Assembly (NCBI GenBank): GCA_003427395.1 | Contig: BFEA01000007.1 | Location: 3,563,210-3,627,209, forward strand | Length of the DNA: 64,000 bases | Origin: Chara braunii | Taxonomy: Eukaryota > Plantae > Charophyceae | Direction of reading: 5' to 3' | In this document: positions 1 to 63,998 of the stretch, one piece after another | How positions within the stretch are numbered: position 1 is the first letter of the stretch | How the letters are laid out: each line of letters opens with the position of its first letter | Made by a program: the position numbers and the translations under genes | The notes under the pieces: model-generated | Told to the model about the DNA's origin: nothing | Seen by the model: only the letters and a program-made list of their open reading frames with translations | Databases searched by the model: none

Positions 1-1767
1 GTTGTTGTCGATGGCTTTCATTACACGGTGGAAGGCTGCTACCCTATTCGTCAGGGCAAAATGTGTTTGTGTGCGTGTGTGGGCGAGGGAAAAGGTGCCG
101 AACTCACGAACTCGCAGCCTGGTACTCCGTTGAGGCTCATGAGAGATGCTGAAAGAGGTCTCTTATCTAAACTAATGATCAATTGACGACTGCTCTCTTT
201 AGATGCGTTGAACTCGGTAACGCAACTGACGACACCTGTGAACGACGACTGCAAGGCGGACCTGTTATGAGAGGGGGCCACGCCGATGCGCGTATACCCC
301 ACCGTCTTCCCCGAACACAACGCACCCTCATTATGAATGTACACAAGCTAGATTTCCGGTCATTACAGTCAAGACGGGGGTGCGTTATGTTCGGGGGAAG
401 ACGGTAGTAGCTCGGAGGACGGTTGTGGCATCGGGCCTCGCTCCAGCACTCCCAAACGTGCAAAATGAGAATGAATCTTGCGGTAGAACATGGGAATATA
501 CAACGCCATATTGTTTGTGCATGTGGTGAGTAGTGGAGCGAGAGGTCCATGAACTACTCGAAGCGGATATGCGCCGTGGCGCCCATACCTCTCAACCGAC
601 TACCTACCTCGACTACCTACCTCTCAACAGACTACCTACCTCTCAACCGACTACCTATCAGAACAAGTTAGCAGAATGGAATGGGATCTTGAGCCGTCTG
701 AAACGTAGCTGGAAAGTTTCATGGGAAGGGTACGTATTTTTATTTTTTCTGTATTGTAGTTTTCTGGGAAGGCTATGTATGAGGCCGCGCCGTTGGTTCG
801 GCTGGTCGTGGGACTGAGGGCTGTACAATGGGGTGATCAGGACGCCCCACCACCGTAAGGTGGCTGGCGTCCGTTCGAAAGAAGTCGTCGTCGGAGGTAC
901 TTGTGGTCTGAGAAATGGATGGTCCTTCTTGACTAGATATTCCTCTGACCTGGTTAAAAAGAATTTGTCGCTCGAGCTGGTGGAAGAAGGGCCACGTGAG
1001 AGAGTATCCGTACGAACGCGAGTTATAGACGACAGGAACTGTCCCTGGTTCTCTCATTACGAGGTAGTCCTGGTCTCTTCATTTGCACAATTTTGAGTCT
1101 CTCCCCGTTGGACGCTGCCGGGTTTTGGGATGTGCAAACGGTAACCGAAACGGGGATCTTTCTTTGACCGTTGGTTGTCTTCTCAGCACCTCAAACGGGT
1201 TCTGAGTATGGGCCGTGTATCCGTATTTGTCGAGCTATGCACGATGATGAAAGGCGATGGGATCTTCAACGAACGTAGGGGTGGTCGTCCTTACGTTAGC
1301 GTCCATTGGAACACTGTTGGTGAAGTTGTCCTGCTTCATCAGCAAGTTCGTTCCTACATCGTAACGGCTCACCGCGACAGCCCTTTTGCGTGCGGCGGAA
1401 TATCGGACGGAGGCGGAAGTCTGCATCCAACCCTCGTAAAAGAGTTGTTTTAAGCATCCATGATACTCCATGTCTTCGGTGAATCAGCAGTCATTGCGTG
1501 TTTATGGGCAAGTTGCAGCGTCTTTGCTTCGTAGGTCCTCCCAGTGAAATATAGAAAAAGGAGTTTTATGGCACCTTACATTAGGGTAAATGAGGTTAAA
1601 GGGGGGTTATCTGCGGGGACTTCAATTTCGCAGCTCGGATCCCTGTTTTTGAATTACCTTCAATTTCTGATCTCTTTTATCGCTTGTTGTTTTTTATGTA
1701 TCCATTCTCGGCGTTTTCCTTTCCGTGCCGTTCCCGCGTTTCTCAAGCCGCTCTCTTCCTGTTGTAT

Positions 1768-1836
<69 letters not shown>

Positions 1837-2283
1837 GAACAAGCAGAGCCGTTGCAGTACCGAGAACATGGATTTACGCGAGGATGTCAGTGGCCCCCGT
1901 CGACCGGCTCGCCCCGGTCTTACTGACGAGCAAAGTTGCCTGCGCGTCTTAGCTATCTCCCTCGTTCGCATGCGAACTATCTGTGACTCCACTTGAGAGT
2001 CTCGCTCTTTCGTTCCGCGTCGGCGCAAATTTGTCTGATATCCATGTCCTCGCTCTGTATGCCTGGGAAGAATGGGGTTCGTCAAACGCATCTTGCGTCA
2101 CCCATTGCCACACGTTTCAGTACGTCCGAATCATCGTGTGACTATTCCCATCGTGCGTCCATAGCGTCATGGGACACCTTTTGCGCTCCCCTTCGCCCCC
2201 AATACTTGTTCAAAACATCTTGCGATTCCCACGCACATCGCACAATACAGCGAACATGACAGCACACACACACTCACACTCAC

Positions 2284-2315
<32 letters not shown>

Positions 2316-2401
2316 GTGCAGCGCGTTCACGGGTATGTGGAGAGAGAGATAGAGAACATCTTGCGATTCCCACGCACATCGCACGACACAGAGACACACA
2401 C

Positions 2402-2467
<66 letters not shown>

Positions 2468-4086
2468 CGCGTTTACCGGGGTGTGGAGAGAAAGAGAGAG
2501 GGGGAGGGACAGCGCGTTCAACGGGGTGCAAAGGAGATTTGTATGGTGAGGGAGAATAGGTGTAATTAAGGATTGGGGGGGTAAAAGAGCACTTTAGCAT
2601 CCGCTAGAAACGGAGGGCACGGGCACGGCAATACAACGGACGCGTGGTATGGATTATGAATATCACCAGTACGTTGTGATTCGATGGACTGTGGTCGTGG
2701 CAAATGTGCTTCTGGAGATGCATCCCCCAAGGACATGTAGACGTTTCGTGGAGGCTTGCGCTCTCGTAAGAAAGGAAGTTTTCTTGCGGCATGCATACGC
2801 CTGGGAAACTTGAGTCTGTGGGGGTTGGGAATCTTGTCTGTGGGGGGACTAGGAAGAGGCCGTCTGTCGTCATAATTTTTCTATTAGTGTGCACAATCGA
2901 AGTCCGGTTTTGTCATTTGCACCGTGCAAGATCCGGTCCTGGGAGTTGGGATCACGTGGTATGGAGGGTTTTCATTCGTTACATACACAGCGAGGCAGTT
3001 TCTTCAGTGGCAGTGGTTTTCACCGTTGAAGTTAGCCGATATGTGAAGGTGATGTTTTGTTGTTAATTTCGCTGATATGAAGTTAGCCGATATGTGGAGA
3101 CGATGTTTTGTAATCAATTTCGTGTGTTGTCATCGCTGACATCGTGGAAGCCGAAGGCGAAATTTAGACATCACTCCAAAGCCGTTCCTCTCCTGTTATG
3201 GAGGCATCGAGCACGTCCTTTGGCATGTGCGAGGACATTGTGCTTTCATGTGCACGGGTGTTGTGCATGGATTTGCATGCTGCTGCAGACGAATGAGGGA
3301 CTGTTCTCAATGCACGGTGATGGACTGTTTTGCATTGAGTAGCGTTTGTGTGGTAGTCTCATGAAGCGTTTCATGTCATCAAGCCGCCCCTTTTGGTGTG
3401 ATTGGCTGATCGAGTATTTTCTGTTAGCGAGCCAGCCACTGGGAGCTGTAATTGTTGCCGGTAGGAACAACATACATGATAGCTTTGTCTTTACATGTGG
3501 GAACAATATGCCTGGTAGTTATTGTTTTTGAAGTGTCGCCTTTTGAGAGATGGTTAACCGACCCCCCATTTTTCACCTCAATTTATAAGAAAACCATAAG
3601 GCCCGCCTTTTATGGCCACGGGGAGGGTGGAACGCACTTTTGGGGTTTCTTCGTGTCTGTGAGGATTCTGCCCGTGCTATCCTCGGGATAGAAGAGCAAC
3701 CTGAAGCTCGCAATTTGTTCCTGTTCGTCATATGTCATGTCATCAGTTATCGGAATTGTTGAACTGTCAGATCCGTGACTCTGGTGAAATTAAGAAAGCG
3801 ACGGAACAACGTAAAGAAGAGCAATGCGTCAGTGCCAGGAAAACTGCGGCTTATTGCTATGCCCTAGAAGCTGCACGGTTGTTGTACATACGCATGCAGG
3901 GTTTTCTTGGGACTGAAAACGTGAACGCAGGTTGAAATCAACAAAGCGACGGAACAAAGTAAAGAAATGCGCTTTGTTTTGACCCTATTTTTGTGGATTT
4001 GGTTGACTGTATTTGTTGCGAATTTTGGGTTGTGCACTTCGTGCTGTTTGACATGGGTTTTCTTGGGACTGGAAACGTGTGCGCAG

Positions 4087-4203
4087 GTTCGATTGGTGGT
4101 GGACAGGGAGACTGGACAGTGCAAAGGTTATGGATTTGTCACATTTATGAATAAGGAGTCGGCACAGAAGGCGATCGAGACGCTCAACGAGACCGAGTTC
4201 AAG
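4087..4203 (+). CDS. hnRNP Q-like exon, C-terminal half of RRM1
   Basis: gcgcag|GTT...AAG|gtacac; VRLVVDRETGQCKGYGFVTFMNKESAQKAIETLNETEFK. Confidence 0.92.
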
Positions 4204-7200
4204 GTACACTCAGCAGGCGAAAGGATTTCCATGTGTGCCTCTGCTGAATGGTTATGCGCTGATGCCGTGTATCAATCTTAATTGCTTGTTTCTGAATGAC
4301 GAATCTCATGGATCGGCTTTCTTTTTTTGCGAATGACGAATCTCATGGATCATGAGGGAGGAAAAATTTGAATGATTTTTGCATTCTTGTGCCGAATGAG
4401 AAATCTTGTGAACGTATGCATGGTTGTAGAAATTTTGCTTTGCTGAAGCCAAGTTGCTTTTCTCAGTGTTTTGGAAGTCCGAAAATTTATCCTTTTATCT
4501 CGCATATCTCTCATGACGTGGCTGAGATCACGGTAGATTGATTGCCGACTGGTGCCGGTTTCTCACTGCGTCTTCTTTATTGTTCCCAGGGTAAGAAGAT
4601 AAGAGTTACACCGTCGCAGTCAAAGCACAGGCTTTTTATTGGGAACATCCCCAAGCTCTGGACAAAGGAGGAGCTCTTGAAAGCCTTATCAGACGAGTCT
4701 GCTGGAATTGAAAGTGTGGATCTGCTGCAGGTTAGTTTTGGTTCTGTGGAATTCCTCAATACAGCGTTTTCTTCTCTTTTTTCTGAGCAAACCTCCCACT
4801 CTCAAGTCATGTCACAGGGGTTGAACTATAGTCAAGCTCAACAGGGTTTTCTTTCCCCGCCGATTCTTCCTAGCCCGTTCGCTCGGCTAGCAAAACGGAC
4901 CAAAATCTTTGCAAAGCTATTTCATAGTAGCAAGCGAGTTTCTATGAAATAGCTTCGCAAAGATTTTGGTCTTTTTCTGTTCAGCCTAGTAAGTAGTAAC
5001 GTGATCTGGCGTGTTGACCCGAAGTGAAGAGGTTGGCAATGTGGTGCGATTGAATACATGTGAACGCTGAGGCAACACAAATGATGGCATTGTTTGTTGT
5101 AGCTGTGTATGCAAAGGATGAGGTGAAGTTACAGTAGCGCCACACAGTTATGGCATTGTTTGGTGAGCAACCAGAAGTTAGGTGCAGAAAGTAAAGGAAA
5201 AGGGAAACTGATCTCTCGAGTGGTTGCCGGCAGTTTGAACAGTTTGCGTCTTGAGCTGGAATCATGGCTGCTCCTCTTTGTTCGTGATGGTCGTGAGTTT
5301 TTGTTCGTGGTGGCTGTGGTTAATGGCCGACCACAAGATTTTAGGACCGGCTGCTAATCGCAGCCATTTTTTGGTGTGCAAAGGTCACGGATTCTTTTGT
5401 TATAGAGGAAGAGAGGTGGTGGAGGAAAAAAAGGAGCGGAGGGTTCTTTTTACCCTTTTCTTTTTCCAAATGTTGCGAGGTGGCGGAGGACGAGGAGCAC
5501 AATAGTATGGAGTAACGAGCGGTGGAGACGAGGAGGAAGATGGAGGTAGTGGCTCTCCATGCGAACCCTGTGAGGAGAAGTAGGATTCTGATTTTCATTT
5601 TTGTTTTCTCTATAATATCTTCGGCATTGAGTGGATGCGGAGCATACTGAGAAGCAGGGTGATGGAGATCTATCTTTGGCATTGAGGGGATGCAGGACGT
5701 GCCGAGCAACAGGGTGATAGATAGATGTGGAGGTAAAAACGGAGAGAGTCTGTGAAGTAAGGAAAGGGTAGAGAGAGATTCAGTTATCCAGTGGTTGACA
5801 CTGTGCCCGAGTACCTGTGTTGCATGCATGGGAAGGGGAGCAGGGTCAATGGTGAGGTAGTGGAGGCATCGATGTGTGGAGAGGTCAGCAAGCTGAAGGG
5901 TGTTTTCTGTTGTTACGCGGGACCTGTGCACTACGGAAATCTGGATCCATACCCGGACTTCCTGGGTGCGTCCAAATTGCCTGCGTATATGCACAATATC
6001 AAGACCAACCATATCTCTAAACTAGGGACTACCCGGGTGAGTCCGCCTATCCCTCATGGAAACAAGTGAAATGGGTTAAGTCTTCCTAACAAATAGGATT
6101 ATTCTCTCACACTTCTGCACCACTGTGCCACCTGCTTCTGGCATTCTCACAATGCAAATAGAGCAGGATAGTAGTGCATGAAAAAGAGGAATCTCTGACG
6201 AAAGGGGCATGAGTAATCTGACAATCAAAATTCCTCACAGCTCGGTAGGCACTAGAGCAAAATAACAGCACGAGAGAGTGAGGGAGCTGTTTTTGGATCC
6301 CGAACTGTCAGAGCACTGTGAGGATCTGCTGTCCGTTTGCCTGCATTTCCTTTTCGTTTCGTCACTGATGAGCTCGCTGTTTTGCCCTTCTTAGGAATTA
6401 CAGAAACAGTCTTGTTCTGTTTATTGCTTTTCTGTGGAAAGTGGTGGTTACTGCAACAAAGTTTTGCTGAGATTTGCATTGTTTATCTTGTTTGTTTCCA
6501 TTTTTCTTGGGTTCTGGCCGCCATGAGGTCAGAGGGATGGCAGAAGGCAATGGGAAATGCCCCCATGCTGTTAGAGTTGCGTTGTTGGGGCATGTCTCGT
6601 CAGCGTACTTGACGTTGTGGACGTCTGGTCCAAAAAACCGTTGTCTTGTGTTGCCAGCGTACTTGACCCTGTGGAGGTCTTTCCCACTGGTCTGGATTGT
6701 TTGACTTCGCCCTAAAAACAATGCGGACACCTCCCCTGACTTCTTACCCTTCGGGTCCCCCTCCTGCTGTAAGCATGGTTTTATCAACTCGAGCTTGTGG
6801 AGGTGACAGGAGTCGGAGAGGGGAAGTCAAAGATGTGGTAGGAGGTAGTGGCGGAGTGATGGTTTAATGAACATCCGGAGGGAGGGACAGATGTGTTTTT
6901 CCCTCTCCCTGAGGGGGAGGATGGTAAAGAGTTGTTTTTCCCGGTCACTAATATGGTTGCGCAAGGGGATGGTTGCGCAAGGGGATCCAAAAGAGGACGA
7001 TGACCGATTGAAGCAAGACAAGCAGGAAGCAGGAGAGCAAGGAGAGCACAGCAGTGCTACACTTGCCCACATCTTTTTGTGCACATTGCATGTCGATTGT
7101 TTTCCTGTGGCGGTATGGAAGAAACTCCTGCCAGCACATCCGAGGCAGAGAGAGGGGGGGAAGTAGGGGATGCCATTGCATCATGTACTCAGATTGCATG

Positions 7201-45288: not shown

Positions 45289-45411
45289 CTATCGACTGCA
45301 ACTGCCTGGGGAACAGTTAAGTCTCCAACCCTCGCTTCTGGCCTCACATTACTCTATCACTAGGATGAGCAAAATCGAATGCATCTTCCACTAGAATATG
45401 GAAATATACAC
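44836..45411 (+). repeat. Two copies of a (GA)n-associated ~125-bp dispersed repeat, either side of an N gap
   Basis: ATCGATTGCAA...AACAGGTAAGTCTCCAACCCTCG...GGATGAGCAAAATCGAATG...ATATGGAAATATACAC at ~44905 and ~45286; related to 63870-63998 on the minus strand. Confidence 0.75.
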
Positions 45412-47443: not shown

Positions 47444-47458
47444 CCCGCTCTGATACCA
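47444..47458 (-). promoter_or_regulatory. Primer-binding site, tRNA-iMet (family B element)
   Basis: Minus strand TGGTATCAGAGCGGG, 1 nt after the LTR end ...GTCACA. Confidence 0.85.
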
Positions 47459-47459
47459 G

Positions 47460-48380
47460 TGTGACGGACCCGCCGGGATGGCGGTCTGTCAGGATCAACA
47501 CGGTGGGTGGAGGAAGGAGGAGATGAAGATGGATATGGAAGGGACAACACAGTTTCGGCGCAGACTCAACACCCACGTACTCCAAAATGTGCAAACACAG
47601 AATGAACTAGAATACAAACTGCAGTTGGGGTATACCCCTAGCAAACTGATTGGACTGGACTGGACTGGCCTCGTACCGACAGTGGTATTGGGCAGGGCTG
47701 GACCGGACTGAAACAGTACACTACTTGTGGGTTCATGCCACGGCCTGGTCCCACAGGCCGAACTGGCAAATAGCCGAATAGGCCCTGGCTGTAGGCCAGG
47801 GCAGATGGAGGCCCGCTGCAGCGAAACTGCATTGATACTACATCAACCGAGGACCAAAGTACTGCATCCGAATGCCGGTGAGAGCATACTCTCTCCTCCA
47901 CTGGCATACGAATCCAGAGTCCTTCCTTCTACTTGGTGCTCTGTGCCCAGACTATCATCACATATCTAGTATCATCCTACGAATCGATAATGCAATTGTT
48001 GAAGTCAACATCAGAATCAAAGTATATGATGAAGCCGATCCCGTAGACCATTGCCAAGACTAGGTACATGTTGATCCGTGTGACCTTGAACCGTAGGTCT
48101 ATAGATCAGAGGTCTTAGTAGTGGTAGGAGTCGTAGCTTCTACAGTGTAGAAAGGTCAAGTACACAGTCATCTGGAAGATCCGGAACTAGCCCTTCGTGA
48201 GTTCTAGGATGCAGTCTGTAGGCAAGTGGCAGTCCTACCGAGTCCAATCAGCGGTACCGAGTCCCAGTCACACTTTGTCAAGTCAACAAGTACCATGTGG
48301 GACTGTGCGCACCCCGTGCCCGACATTCAAGGGTAGACTTTTGGCGATCTGAAGTATAAATCAAGAGGCAGCGTTCAGAC
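47460..48380 (-). mobile_element. 5' LTR of a family B LTR retrotransposon (far boundary approximate)
   Basis: Begins TGTGACGGACCCGCCGGGATGG next to the PBS; an inverted homolog lies at ~61980-62468. Confidence 0.65.
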
Positions 48381-49854: not shown

Positions 49855-49933
<79 letters not shown>

Positions 49934-49935
<2 letters not shown>

Positions 49936-49971
49936 GTCTCTTATACACATCTAGATGTGTATAAGAGACAG
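49934..49971. other. Nextera mate-pair junction adapter (assembly artefact)
   Basis: Exact CTGTCTCTTATACACATCT + AGATGTGTATAAGAGACAG (two inverted Tn5 mosaic ends) inside a (CA)n tract. Confidence 0.98.
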
Positions 49972-51437
49972 CACACACACCCACACACACACACGCGCGG
50001 GCGAGTGTGGCAATGTATATTTTCATGTTCTAGCGGTAGATCCATACGATTATGATCATCCTACCAGTGGAAGTACAGGGAAGCGAGCCGCAAAATTAGA
50101 GACTTCCCTGTTTCTTTTTCCCACTCTCTCGCAAATGATTCGTCACATTGCGCAGCGTACCAGCGCATATTCCAACGATTCGGGAATGCAACGAGCGCAA
50201 CCTCACGGCATCGTCGGAGGTTGCATCACACCTCCCGCAAGTCTCCACCCTCGCATATGGTAAGTAGCGGACTCAGGCCTGCTTCGTATCCCTCTTCCCT
50301 CCTCTCATTTCCCCCTTCTTCTTCTTCTTCCTCGTCTTCCTCGTCTCCTTCTTTTTCTCTTCCTTCTTCCTTATTGATCTTCTTTTCCTTCTTTGTGCGC
50401 CTTTATGAGTGCGGTTATGAAAACAACACCACGGCAAAGTTGCAACCGCTCTGCCCGAAACTTTTGACAAGAGCGAGGGTGAGAGCAACGATCCACAAGT
50501 CGGCACCACCTCATAGGAAAGCCTCGACAGTCGCTGCATAGTATTCTGGCGACCACCGAAAAATGACTCGCTCGTCCCTCGCAGACTGAAACTCACCCAA
50601 AACATGCACAAAGAGTCTCTTATAACTCAAGTATAAGGTCCCACGACCCACGCCTGGAACGTCGCCATCATCGATTGGAAGAGGGAAGGTAAGTCGCCTC
50701 TTCCCTTTTTTTCTTTTTCTTCTTCTTCTTCTTCTTCTTCTTCTTCTTCTTCTTCTTCTCTTCCTGGCAAGTGTCCTTCTTCTTTTTGGGGCCTCGTTAG
50801 ACACTCCTTGTGGACCCGAAATCCACCAGGAAATTATCGTTCCACCTGTCCTTGGGGACGATTCTCGAAAAAAAAAGTGAAAACACCAGAAGGAGATTTC
50901 CTTGTGGCGTCCTTGTGGCCACGACCATTTTTTCCTAACCCCCAAGGGACCTCCCGAGGTCCCTCAGAGCACAAGGAAGCGCGAAATTTGGAGCGACGAA
51001 GGCATGCGTCGATGCACAATTTCGGTTCGAGGGTGGTCCAGGCGTGGTCCAACGAATGGGAGCACGGACATCCCTGCGTCCGAAATCTGCACGGCGCCCC
51101 AATGACTCCAAACGGTAACCGGAGGCGTGAGGCCTCCGTCCGTCGACGTGAATTGCCGGCTAGCGTCCTGCGGTCTGCTGCGGCGGGCGATCGTCGACAA
51201 CGGTCCGGAATTCGAATACTTTTCCCACACGGCGCCCCTTTCGACGACGACAGTCTCATTCGACAAGATCGTCGTTTTCTTCAATTGTCGTCACGCGTCG
51301 CACGTTGGAGCACAGATCTTCCACCGATCTATCTCGTCGTCGTGCTGCTTCTCGTCGTTGTCTTCTTCCACTTGTGTTTCGTCAGCCTCATCCCGCTCGC
51401 GGCTCGCAGAAGGAGATCTTCGAAGAAAGCCGACAAG

Positions 51438-53156
51438 ATGGATCGACAATTGGCGAACGACAGACCGGCAGGCACAACCTCCGGAGCGAGCAATCGGCAA
51501 CGCAGTGCGGGGTCTGTGGAGAAGCACCCGTACGACCCGAGGTTGTATGCACACCTGCCTTCACACGAGATTCCTCTGCCGCCGTCGGATGACGAGGGGG
51601 GCGACGCCAAGTCGTCGACTTTGCCGTTGGGAAGTGGTTCGACGCAGGAATGGGCGGCGACGCAGTCGTCCGGCGGCAGGCGGGTGGAGACCCCGTGGTC
51701 TTACACCTCACTGCTGAACGAGGGGCTGTGAAACGACGACAACAATGCAGCGGTTGATCTCGACTTCCAGTTGTCCAGCAGCAGCGGAGCAGCAGCAACG
51801 CACACTCGGATCATCAATCCCCACCCGGGTGGGGATTGCGTGGACAACACACACGGTGGTGTGTGCGGGCCGTGAGACGGCAGTCTGCCTCAATCGCTTC
51901 ACGAAGGTGGTGGTAATCGGAATGACTCGTCGACGACCGTCGGAGGAGGAGTCGGTGCGCGCGAACGTCCGGAGTGGATGCGCTTGTCACCTGCGTCGCG
52001 AAGTGGATCCGACACTCCTCAAGGACGGTAGCGTCCGAAGGATTTGCGTGAGGGAGGTGCAGACGTGCAACGCGACAGCAGGCAGCTATAGGCAGAGTGC
52101 AGGCAGGCCTTGCATCAAGGTGAAATGGAGACAATCACGAGAGGGGTGCAACGACTCTACGTGGACGAAGGGGACAAAGCAGCTGTTGAGGAGGCCCAGG
52201 GGTGTGATGACGTTAACGGTGATGTCGATTGCAACTCCGACGATTTGCCAGCCATTAGGCCGCTTGGTAGGAAGGCGACGAATGGCGGAGCGAGTGCGAA
52301 GAAGGGTCCCGCTACGAAAACTCGACGGAGCAAGAAAATGGATGACGACACAAGACGGAGCGATGGCGAGGGCGGCTGAAATTTCTGGTCAGTGGCAGAC
52401 ACGATCGCACTCATCAGGGCAAAAAGGGATCAAGATCTGTATATCGCCGGCATGGGCACCAGTTTCGCCCGCATGAAAACGAGGGAGTGGAAGTGGGAGG
52501 ACGTGCGGGCGAGGTTGCAGACGATGGGCGTGACGAGGGAGGCCGTCGACTGCAGGAAGAAATGGGACAACTTGATGCAGCAATTCAAGAAGGTTCACAA
52601 GTTCCAGAACCTCTCCGGCGGGAAGGACTACTTCAAGCTTGCTTCAAAGGCCAGGCGATCGGAGGGCTTCAGCTTCGTCATGGACCGGAGCGTGCACGAC
52701 GAAATGGAGGCCATGACGAAGGGGGATCACACGATCCACCCGAAAAATTTGGCGGTCACGGGGGCGGCTGGGGGGGTTCATATGCCGGCAGGCGCGGGGG
52801 CCGGAGGGGACACCATGGGCAGTGAGGGTGGAGGGGAGGCAACCGACGAGGAGCAGGGGTCGACGAAAGACTCCACATTCAGCGCGGGGAGCGGCTACGG
52901 TTATGGGAAGAGGAAGAACATGCGGCAACAAACCTTTGAGGCCGTCGCCGAGGTCATGGACATACATGGTGCGCTCATGGCGAGCACAATGGACAGCACG
53001 AGCAAGCGACAATGCTCAATGATGTTACGTTAGTGCGAAATCCTAGAGAGCAAAGTGGAAGTGCAAGTTAAACATTATGTTGCGGCGGATGTGGCGAACA
53101 GAATAATGTGCAACGCCCTTATGGAGATAGCGAAAGCCATCCACGAGAGATCATGA
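51438..53156 (+). pseudogene. Harbinger-encoded trihelix/Myb-SANT DNA-binding protein (572 codons, 6 in-frame stops)
   Basis: One frame from MDRQLAND to AIHERS*. Trihelix domain FWSVADTIALIRAK...WKWEDVRARL...DCRKKWDNLMQQFKKV...YF; C-terminal coiled-coil-like helix. Confidence 0.88.
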
Positions 53157-53229
53157 GCGATGCTGCCAGTAATGTCCACCGTTGCTTTAGTGGCCTGTCT
53201 CTCCACGCGTTGCGCCTGCGAAGATGGCG

Positions 53230-53279
<50 letters not shown>

Positions 53280-54431
53280 CTGTGTGTGTGTGTGCGTGTG
53301 TGTGTGTGTGTCGTCGGCAAATGCTTAGCAGTACCTTTTTTAGATTTTTTTTTTTTTTGAGTTGTTGCACTTCGTCTTCCAGGAGAGTAGTATGTGCTAC
53401 ATTTGAGGTCTCCACAGCTAGAGGGCCACGTGTTGAAGGGGTTATGTGGGTCGAGGATTGTGGTGGACGGGGGTGTCACCGTTCGTGTCCACGACATTGC
53501 GAGCCGGGGGGGTGTGTGGGGGTTGTTTTTTTTTTAAGACATTCATATCGGCCTCTGGAGAGTGTATGGACGCGCGTCCACAGAGGCGCCGAAGGGTCTG
53601 TAGGCGCCTCGGGGAAGGTGGTCATGGCAACGGATGAAGGGCGTGTGCGTGAAGGAGGTCTGGAGAGTTGTTGTCACACGTGTCGCTGTCGACGACAACG
53701 GCAAGCGAAGAATCGAGGTTGGGGCCCGTCCGTCTGCTCCATGCTTTCGATGCGGCTGTGCCTCCTCCCGCATAAAGGTCGCCCGCTTGCGGCTTCTACA
53801 GCACTGAAGGTCAGCGCACACGGTGCACAACGACGACATCCACGAGGGACGCCCTCTGCCTTTTCTCGCCGTCGCACCGCACAACGATCACGTGGTCGCC
53901 CGTTTCTTCGCACTCCTCCTCGTCAGGGACTTCTTCAGTATCGTCGTCGATCATCGCTGTGGATCTTGTCGCTTTGTCGTGACGTCGATATTCCGTGCCA
54001 TGTAAAGTGCTCTCATTTGCCACGCGTACGTCTGCAGACACGTGGACAGACGGCGCGGCCGCGGACTTCAGCATCGCCCCGGATCAATATCGCCCCTTCG
54101 GAGGTCCGGCATCCTTTAGTCGCGAAGATCTTCTTCTTGCCGCGGAGCAGTGTTCGCAGGGTTCATCTCCTTCTCGCGTTCGCGTCGAGGTCGAGCTTGT
54201 GTGTGCGGCGAGGGCGGGCACCTCTCTCTTTGTCGCCGCGGATCTCTCTCGCCACGCAGGGGTTCGCCGTCGTCTGTGTCGTCTTCTTCTCGCCGAGACC
54301 AGTCTCGCTGGTGTCACCCAAGAACTTCGGTACACGTGGACGCATTGCTCCCCAGCACGGCAAAGGCGCTTGTTCGTCGTCGGTGCGAACGCCGACGAAG
54401 AATCGAACAGCCATTGACGGAAGCAGGAAGC

Positions 54432-56154
54432 ATGTCTGAGCGAGGCAGCGCCCGTGGCAAGAAGCGGGAAAACATCCCTGCAGACACTCAGGGGCGGGAA
54501 AGGGGTCGGCGGCATGTCCCCGAGGCGAAAGGGCTACGTTCGGAAGAAGCATTACCAAGCCTGCCTCTTCGGCGAGGGCGAAGTTGGGCGACAACTAACG
54601 AAGAGGAAGACGACAACGTGTTCATGACGGAGGAGGAAGCAGCAGAGGACACCGTGTCGGCGCCTCGGGGAAGCAGTCTTCAACGCTCATCTGATCAGAG
54701 CGCTGCGAGGAGATTGTTGACGCCCCCTCTGAAGGCGCAACAAGTGCGTGCCCACAACAGGAGGTTGTCATCGACGTCGGCGACGAGGACGACGAGCCCT
54801 TGGAAAGCCATAGGAAGCGCAATGTCACACAAGGCGCCACGGCGACGACAATCAGGATACGCGGCGCGACTGAAGAAAGGCCACCTCAGGGTGGCCTACC
54901 CTCCACGTTGTCCCAGCCCCGTCCGTGCAACACGGCTGCAAAGGGAGGCTCCATGGAACGCGGGGGAGGGGAGGGGGCCCAGCAAGAAGAGCGCGTGGCG
55001 AGTGGGGTGGTGATCGCTGGTGCAACTGCCGGGTCTTCGAGCAATGTTGCTGCCGTGGCGAGGGCGAGAGAGGAGCTCGCTGTTGTGGAGCGGGAGGTGA
55101 CGCGCGGCGACAACAAGGGTGAAAGAGAGGACGAGGACCGCCTTTTAAGCCGGGTTCGGAGGGGAGGGATGGCGAAAGATGTCGCCGAGTGTGACCGCCT
55201 GTGGGTTGATGACAAAGCGTTCTGGACGACGGGGGAGGGGCGAAGATTGTACAACATCGTCCACGAAACACGGGAGTACTTTGTCGCCATCGCCAGCGGG
55301 CTGCCAGCGCCCACCGTGTCCAGGAGTGTCGTCATGCCGAAATCCGCCACGACCCTGACAAGGATTGCAGATCCCTCACGACTGCAGCAGGCGATCTTCC
55401 GCGCGACGACAACGGAGAATATTTCTCTGCGCGTCTTGCACAGATGGGTCTTCAAGTCCGGGAACCGCCCCCGAGGATACAATCTCGCTTTCCAGTACGC
55501 GCTGGAGTCGGTGGCGACGGACATTGCGTGCGTCATGTGGTATGGCGAGGAGTGGAGCAACGTCGTGAGCGCGGCCGTTTGCGTGCACACAATCGACCTT
55601 AACATGGACTTGCCACTGTGGTTTGCGGCCGCGAACATCGAGGACAGGCCAGAGGACGACGACATGGCGGCGCACCAAGAGTCGACCGTTATATGCATCT
55701 CGCATGCATGTCGCGTCGCGTTGCAAATGGGTGGCAACGTCAACGACGAGTTCATCTCGCACGATCTTCTGTCAAGGATTGTGGATTGCTTCAGGCTTTT
55801 GTGGCTGCCGGTATGTGGTTGATGCACATGGCGGGAGACGATCCGCGCAGCCACTACGAAGCCTTTTACTTCGCAAAGCTGGTCGTGAAGCCCACGCTCG
55901 TCGCATCCATGTGTCGCGCCTTCGATCATCGATGGTCTGTCATCCGGGCCACGAACGCCGTCACGGAGAGACTAGGGAAGGCGAACGCCACCTTCGGAGA
56001 GTACCCGAAGTACATCCCCGACTGGGCTTCCTGCGACATCGTCTTCGGGCACGATGCGAGCATAGCGGGGCCCGAGCACGCGAAGAGGAGGGATTGGTTG
56101 GGTTCGGGGCCCTTAGAGGACGACGACGACGACGATGGAAAAAATGACACGTAG
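54432..56154 (+). pseudogene. Third Harbinger-borne ORF, unknown protein (~570 aa, two frameshifts at ~54760 and ~55797)
   Basis: Starts MSERGSARGKKR, then a basic/acidic disordered N-half and a ~300-aa aromatic-rich helical region (LWVDDKAFW...YALESVATDIA...HTIDLNMDLPLWF...HYEAFYFAKLVVKPTL...YIPDWA), ending in an acidic tail. Confidence 0.7.
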
Positions 56155-57546: not shown

Positions 57547-58891
57547 GATCGTGTTTCACTCGTTCCACCAAAGCATTCCTCAGGGCCAATGCTTTGTATG
57601 TCGACGTCATCATTGACACAGGCTGGAGGGGCTCTTCGATCCCCAAGTCCACACGTCGTCGCACACCATTAGCGCCAACCTCCCATAGCAGATTGTCGTC
57701 GGAGGGGATTCCTGCGTCGATCAGTATGTTGTGCAGTATGCACACGGCGATGAACTGCTACATGAGCGTGTCCAAGTTTGTCTTGTGTGTCCGCAGAAAC
57801 AACTGCCACTTGTCCTTCAGCCTGCCAAACGCCCTCTCCACCGCTCCCCTCGCCACCTTCTGCTTGTTGTCAAACCGCTCCTCGTCGACGTGATGATTGA
57901 TGCCTCCATACGGGACGACCATCCATTCCGAAGGGGGGTAGCCATTGTCCGCCAGAACGTACCCGTTCGTCTTCACACTGAACGGCAGTGTCACGGGGGG
58001 ACCACGGAACAACGACCCCTCCTCTGCGCGCAGCGACAGGCTGGACAACTGCAGCACCCTGATGTCGTGGCAGCTACCTGGGCATCCCATGTGCACGTCG
58101 AGCACACGCAAGTCCAGGTCGACGACAACCTGCGCAACAATGGAGAAACGGCGCTTGCTGTCGTAGTAGTTTTCGCTCGGAGCGTTCGCCGGCTTGTCGA
58201 CGTCGATGTGAGTACAATCAATGCAACTGTGGCAGTTGGGGAACCCTTTATCAGCAAACGCCCGCAGAACGACGAGTTTACGAACTCCTGTCGGCCACAC
58301 GATCTTCTCTTCGAATACCCTTAGCAGCACGTCAGTAACGTCGCGGACGGCAATCAGCTCAGAAGCTCGTCCAATCCCGAAGTTGCACGTGCTGCTCTCG
58401 TACGTCTCCCCTGAAGCCCACCTGTACAGTGCGTACGCCACAATCTGGTCCGGCTGCAAAGGCTCCCTGTAGAACGTGACCCGCCGCTGAAGATAAGGCG
58501 CACACGCCTCCACGATTTCCTGGAACACTCGCGGCGACATTCGCAGCTTATCCCGAAAGTAGTCGTCTGTCGTGGCGTCTCATTGCCTGAGGTCTTCCCA
58601 CGTGCCTCCTGTCCTGCGCTTCACCCACCATGGAGGCGTCGCACGAGGTATCACTCCGCAACCCAACGCGTAGCACAGCTGAACAACAGCCTCCGACGTC
58701 GCCACGTTTTCGACCCCATCGTACGGATCTTGCGTCAATGTCCTCCGTCTACGCGCGTGGAACTGCTCCTTCAGTCGCCCCAGCGCCCTCTCCTGCTGGC
58801 ATCGAAGAACGATCGTGGACACGGTCGCCACCACGGCCTGCAGCTCACGAGGAGTCAACACATCATGTCTACCCTCTGCGCCGGCCTCCAT
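57455..58891 (-). pseudogene. PIF/Harbinger (HARBI1-like, DDE_Tnp_4) transposase with two in-frame stops
   Basis: Single frame. Motifs LRMSPRVF, FPNCHSCIDCTHI, GSCHD, LADNGYP, VERAFGRLK, CILHN; stops at 58580-58582 and 57758-57760. Confidence 0.93.
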
Positions 58892-59790
58892 AGCCGCGAC
58901 GTGGACACGGTCCCATCGTTCCGCTGCTGTCTGTGTCGTCCTTCCGCATCCGACGAAGAAGCCGAAGACATTCGTCGAAAGGTGGCCCCTTTTCTCTGCT
59001 TACAGTCCCGCACACGGAAACGAGGAGCAACGCTCAGTCTGCGTGTGCAAAGGTCCACGGCGATGGAAGCACCACACGCTGCCCGCGCAGTCGCAACGGC
59101 TTCGGGACGGAACCTCCGCTGCCGCTGAGCCTCTTTCCGCAGCACGCCGCCCTCGCGCCGCCAGCCACACGTCGTCGTCGTCGTCGCAGCAGTCATTCGA
59201 ATTTCGAATTTCAAATGCCCACGCCCTTGGGGTGAAATTTCTTTTCGCGTCGCCCGTCGTGTGCCGTTTCCTGCCTCGCATCGCTGGACCACGCCGCCTC
59301 CACACGGACAAAAGAAGTTGGACCCCGCGATCGCTAATTTACGTATGACAACGGTCGCGGGGAAGCCACAAGGAAATATCCTCGGGGGAGGTCCCCAAGG
59401 ATGAGTGGAACGACGCCGCAAATTCCCCTAAAAAAACACAAGGACATTTCCTTGTGGCTCAAGGAAACCGTAAGGAGTGTCTAACGAGGCCCTTTATCTA
59501 CTTCCTTTCTCCGCGCACCCCTTCCTTTACTCGCGAGCCCGTTTTTTTCCCTTCGTGCTCGCTTCCCGGTTTTACGCATCCTCATTTCCCTCATAGTTCT
59601 TAAATAATTCCCTCACCACGGTCTGCTCCTCCGCACGGGCGATCTCCGTCATGCTGCATGGTACCTAGCACGATTGAGATCGTGGCGGGGTTTTCTCCTT
59701 CTCTTCTGCGAAGGCAAATCCTCTTTTTTGTAAACAGAATCCGCCCTGGTTTCAAAGGCAGATTCATTCAACTGAAACTATCAAGAATAA

Positions 59791-61979: not shown

Positions 61980-62468
61980 CATGGACTCTGCATCCTATAT
62001 TTCTCAACTCTCCTTGTTATAGAGTTCCACTGCTTTTGCGGATAGCGTGTTTATGGATTTTGCGATCCACTACAAGTCTGAGGATCGTGCAACGGACGTC
62101 TATTTGTCCTGACCTACAACCAGGGCCTATTAGGTTATTTTGCATGTTCAGCCTATTGGACCAGGCCGTGGCCTGACCCCACAGGCCGTGTGCTCATTCA
62201 GTCCAGTCAAGTCATGCCCGGTACCACTGTCGGTACCAGTCCAGTCAAATCCAGTCAAATCCAGTCCAATCCAGTGTAGCCAATCCATTGGGGGTGTACC
62301 CCAGCTGAAGTTTGTTTCAACCTCATTCTTCATTTTGCACACTTTGGAGTATGTGCCTATTGAGTCTGCGTCGGAGCTGCACTGTCCTTTCCAGCTCCAT
62401 CTCCACTCTGTCACCCTCACCCCTTCGTCTCCATCCCGACGGACCGCCATCCCAGCGGGTCAGCCACA
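61980..62468 (+). mobile_element. Diverged family B LTR copy (inverted relative to 47460)
   Basis: Ends GGACCGCCATCCCAGCGGGTCAGCCACA, the reverse complement of the 47460 start; not followed by a PBS. Confidence 0.7.
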
Positions 62469-63254
62469 TTGCGGCCTTCAACATCGGATTTTGAGCTCTG
62501 CAATGAGTGACGGCGGGACTTAATTCGAAAACGAGATCCCACTTGCATACCTTTGCCTGTCGGTTCGAAAAGACATCGAGTAGCCCGTACGGAGGTTCAT
62601 AGTACTTTTGGATTAGGTAGACGTTTGAAAACTGCGCGCACACATTTCCTTTGTCGTGTGGCGATGGTTGTTTCTCGCTAACGCTGGAATCACATGGGAG
62701 ATTCTAGTTTTGTCCGTGTCTCCACACTCAATTATCCAAAAATCATTGACACACCCCGTCTTGTTGTTCTTTCAGGGCCTTTTCTGCATTTTAATCACTC
62801 CGACCGGAAGACAGCATAGGGCCTGAGGTTGAACGTCGCACACCTTTTGGTGTAGCCTGGTTTCAGACCGATTCCTTTTTGGCCTGAGAATAGACAGTAG
62901 AAGTAGATATAGACATGTAGTTTTAGGGGATAGTGAAAGTTCGGCTGGTCCAACTTAGGGGGAGTCGTTGAGATTGGAAGTTGCCAATAAATAAAGATGA
63001 GTAATGCTCTCAGTAAGTTCTCTCTCGATTAAATTGTGAGGTCCACGACCTCAATCATTCTGTTATATGAACAAGTGGACCTGCTGCAGCTATGCTGAGG
63101 TGAATAACGATAACAAAACATTTTGCAGAACACCCCAACCATCAGTTGGATCCAAATTTGCAATGTGCCCCAACCGGACGCTCCCCCACTTTGCAAAATG
63201 CCTCGGCAATTGCTAAGTTTTCGCAAAAAAAAAAAAAAAAAAAAAAAAAAAACG

Positions 63255-63712
63255 TGTATATTTTCATGTTTTAGTGGTATACTCATTCGATTTTCCTCAT
63301 CCTATCAATGAAAGTACACTCTCTCTCCCTCTCTCTCTTTCTCACTCACAAAAAAAAATAAAAATGTATATGTTCTAACGGTAGATTCATTCGATTTTGC
63401 TCATCCTATCGATGGGAGTACCCTCTCTCTTTCTCTCTCATACACACTTACACACACCCACAAAGTGAATTTTTGCATGTTCAAGTGGTAGATTCGTTAG
63501 ATTTGGCTCATTGTATCGATGTAAGTACCCTCTCTCTCTCTCACACATAACAAAAATGTGTATATTTTCGTGTTCTAGCGGTAGATTGATTCAATTTTGC
63601 TCATCCTATCGACGAAACTACCCTCTCTCTCACACACACACACATGCACACAGTAGATTTTTGCATGTTCTAGCGGTAGATTTGTTAGATTTGGCTCATC
63701 GTATCGATGTAA

Positions 63713-63788
<76 letters not shown>

Positions 63789-63998
63789 AGTCTCAATCTC
63801 TCTGTCTGTCTGTCTCTCTCTCACTCTCTCTCTCTCTCACACACACAAACACACATAAACGTGTAATAGTGTATATTTCAATGTTCTCACTGAAGATTGA
63901 TTCGATTTTGCTCATCCTATTGATGGACGTAGCGTGAGGCCAACCGCGGGGTTCGAAACTTACCTGTTGGCCAGTGCGTTGCTCAACCAATCGATATA
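63255..63998. repeat. Tandem array of six ~60-bp modules separated by (CT)n/(CA)n spacers
   Basis: TTTTCATGTTCTAGCGGTAGATTCATTCGATTTTGCTCATCCTATCGATG-like at ~63255, 63365, 63470, 63558, 63655 and 63870. Confidence 0.85.

Follow-up and report, generated by a model that had tools for sequence, protein, structure and literature searches.

A PIF/Harbinger clade of Chara braunii possesses a bona fide third gene, here called ORF3, which lies between the genes of the two canonical proteins, and the copy found in the window (the whole stretch of 64,000 nucleotides that was analysed) is a pseudogene within a dead element. PIF/Harbinger is the textbook two-protein DNA transposon of eukaryotes. Also in a survey of PHIS transposons covering 836 genomes, two ORFs were the rule for PIF/Harbinger (PMC4482050), and the two canonical Harbinger proteins have been found to cooperate at the ends of the transposon (PMC4671723). 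A Harbinger with three genes was nowhere described in the literature searched, Repbase being outside the scope of that search. The preliminary description of this DNA had raised the possibility of a lineage-specific third gene, and that the gene is genuine is borne out by synteny in nine of nine assessable loci, by intact copies, by the selection that acts on the gene, and by its own start codon.

The element in the window is 8,704 bp (about 8.7 kb) long and is bounded by a perfect 21-bp terminal inverted repeat (TIR), the left copy of which (50789-50809, + strand) is the reverse complement of the right copy (59472-59492, - strand) without any mismatch. The same TIR, with one to four mismatches, also bounds related elements in the loci L001, L003 and L004. 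The flanks of the window element are TTG and TTT, and the 3-bp TWA target-site duplication is thus not intact there; in L001 and L003, the related elements do have a TTA/TTA duplication. Inside the TIRs are three genes, which encode a Myb/trihelix protein (+), ORF3 (+), and a DDE_Tnp_4 transposase (-). The Myb/trihelix gene (ORF1, 51438-53153, +) was delimited by tblastn with the intact 553-aa Myb protein of L001, which aligns over its full length with 71% identity, and within it the ORF at 52392-53033 (+) matches Myb_DNA-bind_4 (PF13837) with a Pfam E-value of 9e-11. The gene is interrupted by six in-frame stops (51729, 51873, 52029, 52089, 52377 and 53031). The transposase gene (57548-58894, -) is 83% identical to the intact 455-aa transposase of L001 according to tblastn and has two in-frame stops (58582 and 57760), and its ORF at 57758-58540 (-) matches DDE_Tnp_4 (PF13359, E 1e-25) as well as Plant_tran (PF04827, E 1e-13). 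With the DDE_Tnp_4-type transposase, the Myb/SANT-like gene and the TIRs, the element has the defining features of PIF/Harbinger, the exception being the target-site duplication of the window copy.

The ORF3 copy in the window runs from an ATG at 54432 to a stop codon at 56152-56154 and is spread over three frames. When the intact relative P0003 (576 aa) was used as tblastn query, the copy was recovered in three pieces (54432-54758, 54713-55816 and 55753-56148) without any stop codon inside them. The first piece (54432-54758, +) corresponds to residues 1-108 of P0003 with 69% identity; in it are found the conserved ATG, basic motifs that resemble a bipartite NLS, and an acidic stretch, and it ends at the first frameshift, a 13-bp deletion after 54758. 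The second piece (54759-55801, +; residues 94-463, 70% identity, no stops) comprises the remainder of a disordered half and some two thirds of a helical domain, and it ends at the second frameshift, a 1-bp deletion after 55801. The third piece (55802-56154, +; residues 446-575, 73% identity) contains the remaining third of that domain, a DWLGSGP motif, an acidic tail and the stop codon, whose position is that of the intact copies. Both deletions were defined by nucleotide alignment with the intact L001 copy as reference, and the T that is missing after 55801 is inserted in four of four RNA reads, the source of which are diverged relatives. For the searches described below, the three pieces were used separately, and no spliced or frameshift-joined protein was used. 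The perfect 21-bp TIRs and the order and orientation of the genes, both noted in the preliminary description, are thereby confirmed, the latter by Pfam-matched ORFs, and the two frameshifts noted in ORF3 are real when compared with L001. Also the similar decay that had been ascribed to all three genes holds, with two deletions in ORF3, six stops in the Myb gene and two in the transposase gene. All three are pseudogenes, and the element in the window is dead.

Some further repeats were seen in and around the element. Imperfect inverted repeats (47457-47820 and 62088-62471), 14.3 kb apart, flank it on both sides; they are about 77-81% complementary in segments of 53-123 nt and could either represent a different repeat that is present in two inverted copies or mark the termini of a larger composite. 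A 21-bp sequence at 45361-45381 has an exact inverted match at 63388-63408, 63594-63608 and 63900-63919, near the end of the window, and the threefold recurrence suggests a tandemly repeated motif. A (GT)n microsatellite (53229-53311) lies within the element between the Myb gene and ORF3, and a (CA)n run (49905-49938) is found just beyond the left TIR.

Intact copies of ORF3 exist elsewhere in the genome. P0003, P0007, P0008, P0013 and P0014 are each encoded by one uninterrupted ORF of 576-582 aa, and a word search returned 52 ORF3 relatives, all of them Chara braunii entries named 'hypothetical protein', several of which have the same length of 576-582 aa and no Pfam domain. The element in L001 is apparently complete, with TIRs that differ by one mismatch, the TTA/TTA duplication and three intact genes, namely those of the 553-aa Myb protein, of ORF3 (576 aa) and of the 455-aa transposase. 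It has the same gene order and orientation as the element in the window and is collinear with it over the whole length at about 81-86% identity. The same gene order is found in L003, L004, L005 and L006, where the identity of ORF3 goes down to 38-42%. The loci L007-L009 were chosen solely by their transposase, which is 56-58% identical to the L001 protein, so as to avoid a selection by ORF3, and in three of three ORF3 lies between the transposase and the Myb gene. Altogether, the order Myb (+), ORF3 (+), transposase (-) is found in nine of nine assessable loci (the window, L001 and L003-L009), and the three-gene layout is thus general among the loci examined: ORF3, rather than being missing from most copies, is intact in several and syntenic in all nine. 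L002 stands outside this count, as the end of the contig and a large foreign ORF preclude an assessment of its Myb and transposase genes. In that locus, an ORF of more than 2,100 codons (1-6337, -) runs off the contig end and is found directly upstream of an intact ORF3, at the place where the Myb gene would be; it probably belongs to a large inserted retroelement or to a giant gene next to the element.

The expansion of Harbinger elements in Chara braunii is very large: with a threshold of E <= 1e-10, the transposase search gave 376 matches, of which the best 120 are all from Chara braunii at 56-92% identity; the corresponding search with the Myb protein gave 132 matches. Within the ORF3 family, three clades are resolved, and the pairwise distances of ORF3 correlate with those of the transposase (Mantel r 0.59, p 0.0006).

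To assess the selection that ORF3 has experienced, dN/dS was determined from four intact copies (dS 0.5-1.1). The ratio is 0.28-0.38 for the whole gene, and thus not near 1; it is lower in the C-terminal domain (0.18-0.24) than in the N-terminal half (0.45-0.61), and the transposase of the same loci gives 0.15-0.24. The deficit of non-synonymous changes is significant for the domain (Fisher test, p = 1e-18 to 1e-32) and also for the N-terminal half (p = 1e-3 to 1e-7). As copies decay neutrally after insertion, these measured values overestimate the ratio on active lineages. ORF3 is under purifying selection and has accompanied the genes of Myb and transposase over a deep divergence of the elements. 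ORF3 could in principle be passenger DNA, a captured fragment of a host gene or an ancient nested insertion that does not serve the element, as a capture of host sequences by DNA transposons does occur and as ORF3 has no assigned function. With purifying selection across element lineages at such synonymous distances, with the retention of ORF3 in nine of nine loci across its three clades, with relatives that are from Chara braunii in 20 of 20 cases checked (of 120) and are in several cases fused to Myb or transposase sequence in gene models, and with no match of ORF3 to any family of transposable-element proteins, this is extremely improbable, and neither a captured host exon nor a nested element was recognised in ORF3.

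A different objection concerns the borders of the gene, as ORF3 might represent the 3' exons of a long spliced Myb-ORF3 fusion protein and not a separate gene. About 50 GenBank models of Chara join a Myb part to ORF3, always in that order, among them the model of the window itself, CBR_g66685 (P0001), and the two genes always lie on the same strand, 1.2-3 kb apart. However, the junctions vary from model to model, connecting Myb residue 365, 409, 491 or 553 to ORF3 residue 1, 5, 10, 11 or 17, as would be expected of an ab initio predictor that merges adjacent ORFs of one strand, and in the intact L001 the two genes are modelled separately as full ORFs, with the Myb stop codon present. The fusion model of the window even skips the frameshifted stretch of the pseudogene. 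CBR_g66685 (window positions 52392-55822) is a 513-aa 'Myb/SANT-like domain-containing protein', 100% identical to the query, which consists of the Myb exon and the middle frame of ORF3, lacks the first ~108 ORF3 codons, and ends at a stop in the wrong frame; it is a chimeric prediction made on the Myb and ORF3 pseudogenes. To judge from such junctions, the ~50 fusion models are probably prediction artefacts. Other chimeras that include ORF3 are P0060, with a TRM tRNA methyltransferase and Myb, P0143, with a DDE_Tnp_4 segment, and P0071 with a reverse transcriptase, to which P0083 is added by the name of its source only; all four are likely annotation chimeras in DNA rich in transposable elements.

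More informative is the conservation around the start of ORF3. Between subfamilies, it runs exactly from the ATG to the stop, and the upstream sequence cannot be aligned. There is an A at position -3 of the ATG in five of five copies, in-frame stops are found just upstream of it in three of five, and synonymous differences are present already within the first ten conserved codons, which means that the beginning of ORF3 is conserved as coding sequence and the DNA in front of it is not. The own ATG that had been assigned to ORF3 before is supported by this pattern, which marks ORF3 as a separately initiated gene with its own conserved start codon. Such a conserved ATG makes a spliced fusion to Myb unlikely. 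In poly(A) RNA, reads that stem from diverged relatives map to ORF3 at low depth, so these relatives are transcribed at a low level, and the copy in the window is essentially unexpressed, with strand ratios too noisy for an interpretation. In three RNA runs, no splice joint between Myb and ORF3 was seen at a depth of only 0-6, which is too low to weigh against a fusion. With the conserved start, the variable junctions and the separate genes of L001, the fusion is very unlikely.

The protein encoded by ORF3 has an NLS-like start, continues with some 250 aa of fast-evolving disordered sequence, and ends in an all-alpha domain (about 300 aa) to which the DWLGSGP motif and an acidic tail belong. 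In the alignment, the N-terminus reads M-S-x-R-G-x-x-R-G-K-K-R and is accompanied by a second basic stretch, and the RGKKR motif is kept across 13 full-length relatives. The basic motifs are followed by an acidic run and then by the variable low-complexity half, and the C-terminal ~330 aa, which close with DWLGSGP and the acidic tail, are strongly conserved. AlphaFold2 predicts the C-terminal ~300 aa to be all-alpha, with nine long helices and two short strands, at a pLDDT of 79 and a pTM of 0.79. With 21 close paralogues the pLDDT was 48, which is unusable, and it rose to 79 with 42 sequences because divergent paralogues had been added; the quality of the predicted model can be regarded as fair. 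Among the conserved positions of the domain, W, F and Y predominate, next to some D, E and H, and there is no Cys/His cluster, a pattern that would be more in keeping with a role in structure or binding than with an enzyme. Both the NLS-like start and the folded helical domain of about 300 aa had been anticipated in the preliminary description, and they hold up, the first in the alignment of the relatives and the second in the AlphaFold2 model.

An exhaustive HMMER profile search against 1.84 billion representatives found 120 ORF3 relatives. The source was Chara braunii in 20 of 20 representatives that were checked, including the ten weakest, and thus the family is restricted to Chara braunii among the 20 of 120 checked, with few other Charophyceae genomes present in the databases. 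At the weak end of the profile matches are paralogues of still greater divergence, which have the first ~100 residues of the ORF3 domain in common. Pfam gave no match for the three ORF3 pieces, nor for 21 family members at E-values up to 10, and a sequence profile search of the PDB with ORF3 gave no match either. With the ORF3 model as query, Foldseek against the PDB found nothing above noise (best E 0.1, TM about 0.2), a shape search of the ESM Atlas reached a TM of at most 0.34, and the best E-value in BFVD was 0.18. In a wide VIA-align comparison with 48,161 chains, the best Z was 7.3, for designed helical repeats and for the core of cytomegalovirus IE1; the resemblance to IE1 was discounted, as for helical proteins a Z below about 13 is noise according to VIA-align. 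A language-model search had pointed to DUF6532 (PF20149) with a score of 0.91, but with only 137-141 shared features, and PF20149 gave no match at E up to 10; the lead was dropped, as a search with P0072, a relative of 43% identity, failed to reproduce it and brought up generic HEAT/TPR-like families instead. The hhalign comparison of the ORF3 domain with the Myb and transposase alignments gave probabilities below 1%, and thus ORF3 is not a duplicate of either of them. The ORF3 domain is without detectable relative by sequence or fold outside its own family.

As there is no homology to a characterised protein, any mechanism has to be proposed by analogy and from the evolutionary pattern. The conserved basic motifs suggest that the protein would be nuclear, and it may act in trans for the element in a non-catalytic manner. 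As a whole, the explanation that ORF3 is a third selected gene that encodes such a nuclear, non-catalytic, trans-acting helper appears reasonably probable. The role favoured for this helper is to work with the Myb and transposase proteins as their partner or to regulate them. Most extra genes of transposons serve the transposition reaction, which favours such a role also for ORF3, and it is further pointed to by the divergence of ORF3 between clades, which is faster than that of the transposase core (mean p-distance 0.53 versus 0.37), in combination with its tight constraint within clades. A function as partner or regulator of the Myb-transposase complex is, by this analogy, tentatively seen as the most likely one. 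A co-folding of the transposase, the C-terminal half of Myb and the ORF3 domain gave a score of 0.00, in a run in which alignments were unused and the fold of the partner was uncertain, and this score carries no weight for or against a complex.

The same divergence between clades with constraint within them would also suit a host-directed nuclear factor, with a VANC-like role in anti-silencing or chromatin targeting outside of the cut-and-paste reaction. The restriction of the family to one lineage, the architecture of NLS-like start, disordered region, helical domain and acidic tail, and the very large expansion of Harbinger elements in this genome would be compatible with such a factor. On the other hand, no likeness of ORF3 to VANC or chromatin factors was detected, with Pfam being empty at E 10 for the 21 members, and a dN/dS of about 0.18 in the domain shows no sign of an arms race. 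A host-directed role comes second to that of a partner or regulator and is considered rather unlikely. It is possible, if speculative, that the Harbingers of Chara form a true three-component system, in which ORF3 would be essential, either as a bridge or regulator between Myb and transposase or as a neutraliser of host silencing, and in which its domain would represent a new all-alpha fold.

Like rice Ping/Pong and zebrafish Harbinger3_DR, the Chara elements have a DDE_Tnp_4 transposase, a Myb/SANT-like gene, short TIRs and, in the intact relatives, a TTA duplication, but unlike these they possess a conserved third gene between the canonical two. Accessory genes that are specific to a lineage are found in Mutator elements, namely mudrB in maize MuDR and VANB/VANC in Arabidopsis VANDAL21. 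Like these, ORF3 is an extra, taxonomically restricted gene without outside homologues that lies beside the transposase gene in an autonomous DNA transposon, but it belongs to another superfamily and has no sequence similarity to them. For VANC in particular, no likeness was detected by the indirect routes of Pfam (E up to 10, 21 members), the PDB, BFVD and the ESM Atlas. PIF/Harbinger transposons have repeatedly given rise to chromatin regulators of the host, such as ALP1/ALP2 and HARBI1/NAIF1, which are Harbinger-derived pairs of interacting nuclear proteins. Unlike ORF3, these are immobile host genes that descend from the two canonical proteins, whereas ORF3 is unrelated to either canonical Harbinger protein and sits in mobile copies. 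Harbinger proteins have been described as interacting nuclear modules that are able to engage chromatin complexes (PMC4671723).

For the annotation of Chara braunii, it follows that about 50 proteins named 'Myb/SANT-like domain-containing' or 'hypothetical' are transposon genes, with many chimeric models among them, and these ought to be masked when transcription factors are compared among streptophytes. As an orphan family with a modelled new helical domain, ORF3 is a tractable subject for finding an interaction with the host or within the transposon. A third protein that is kept by selection across a clade of elements means that the Harbinger system can take on an extra component, and if this is a true three-component system, ORF3 would be part of the explanation for why Harbinger elements have expanded so greatly in this large genome.
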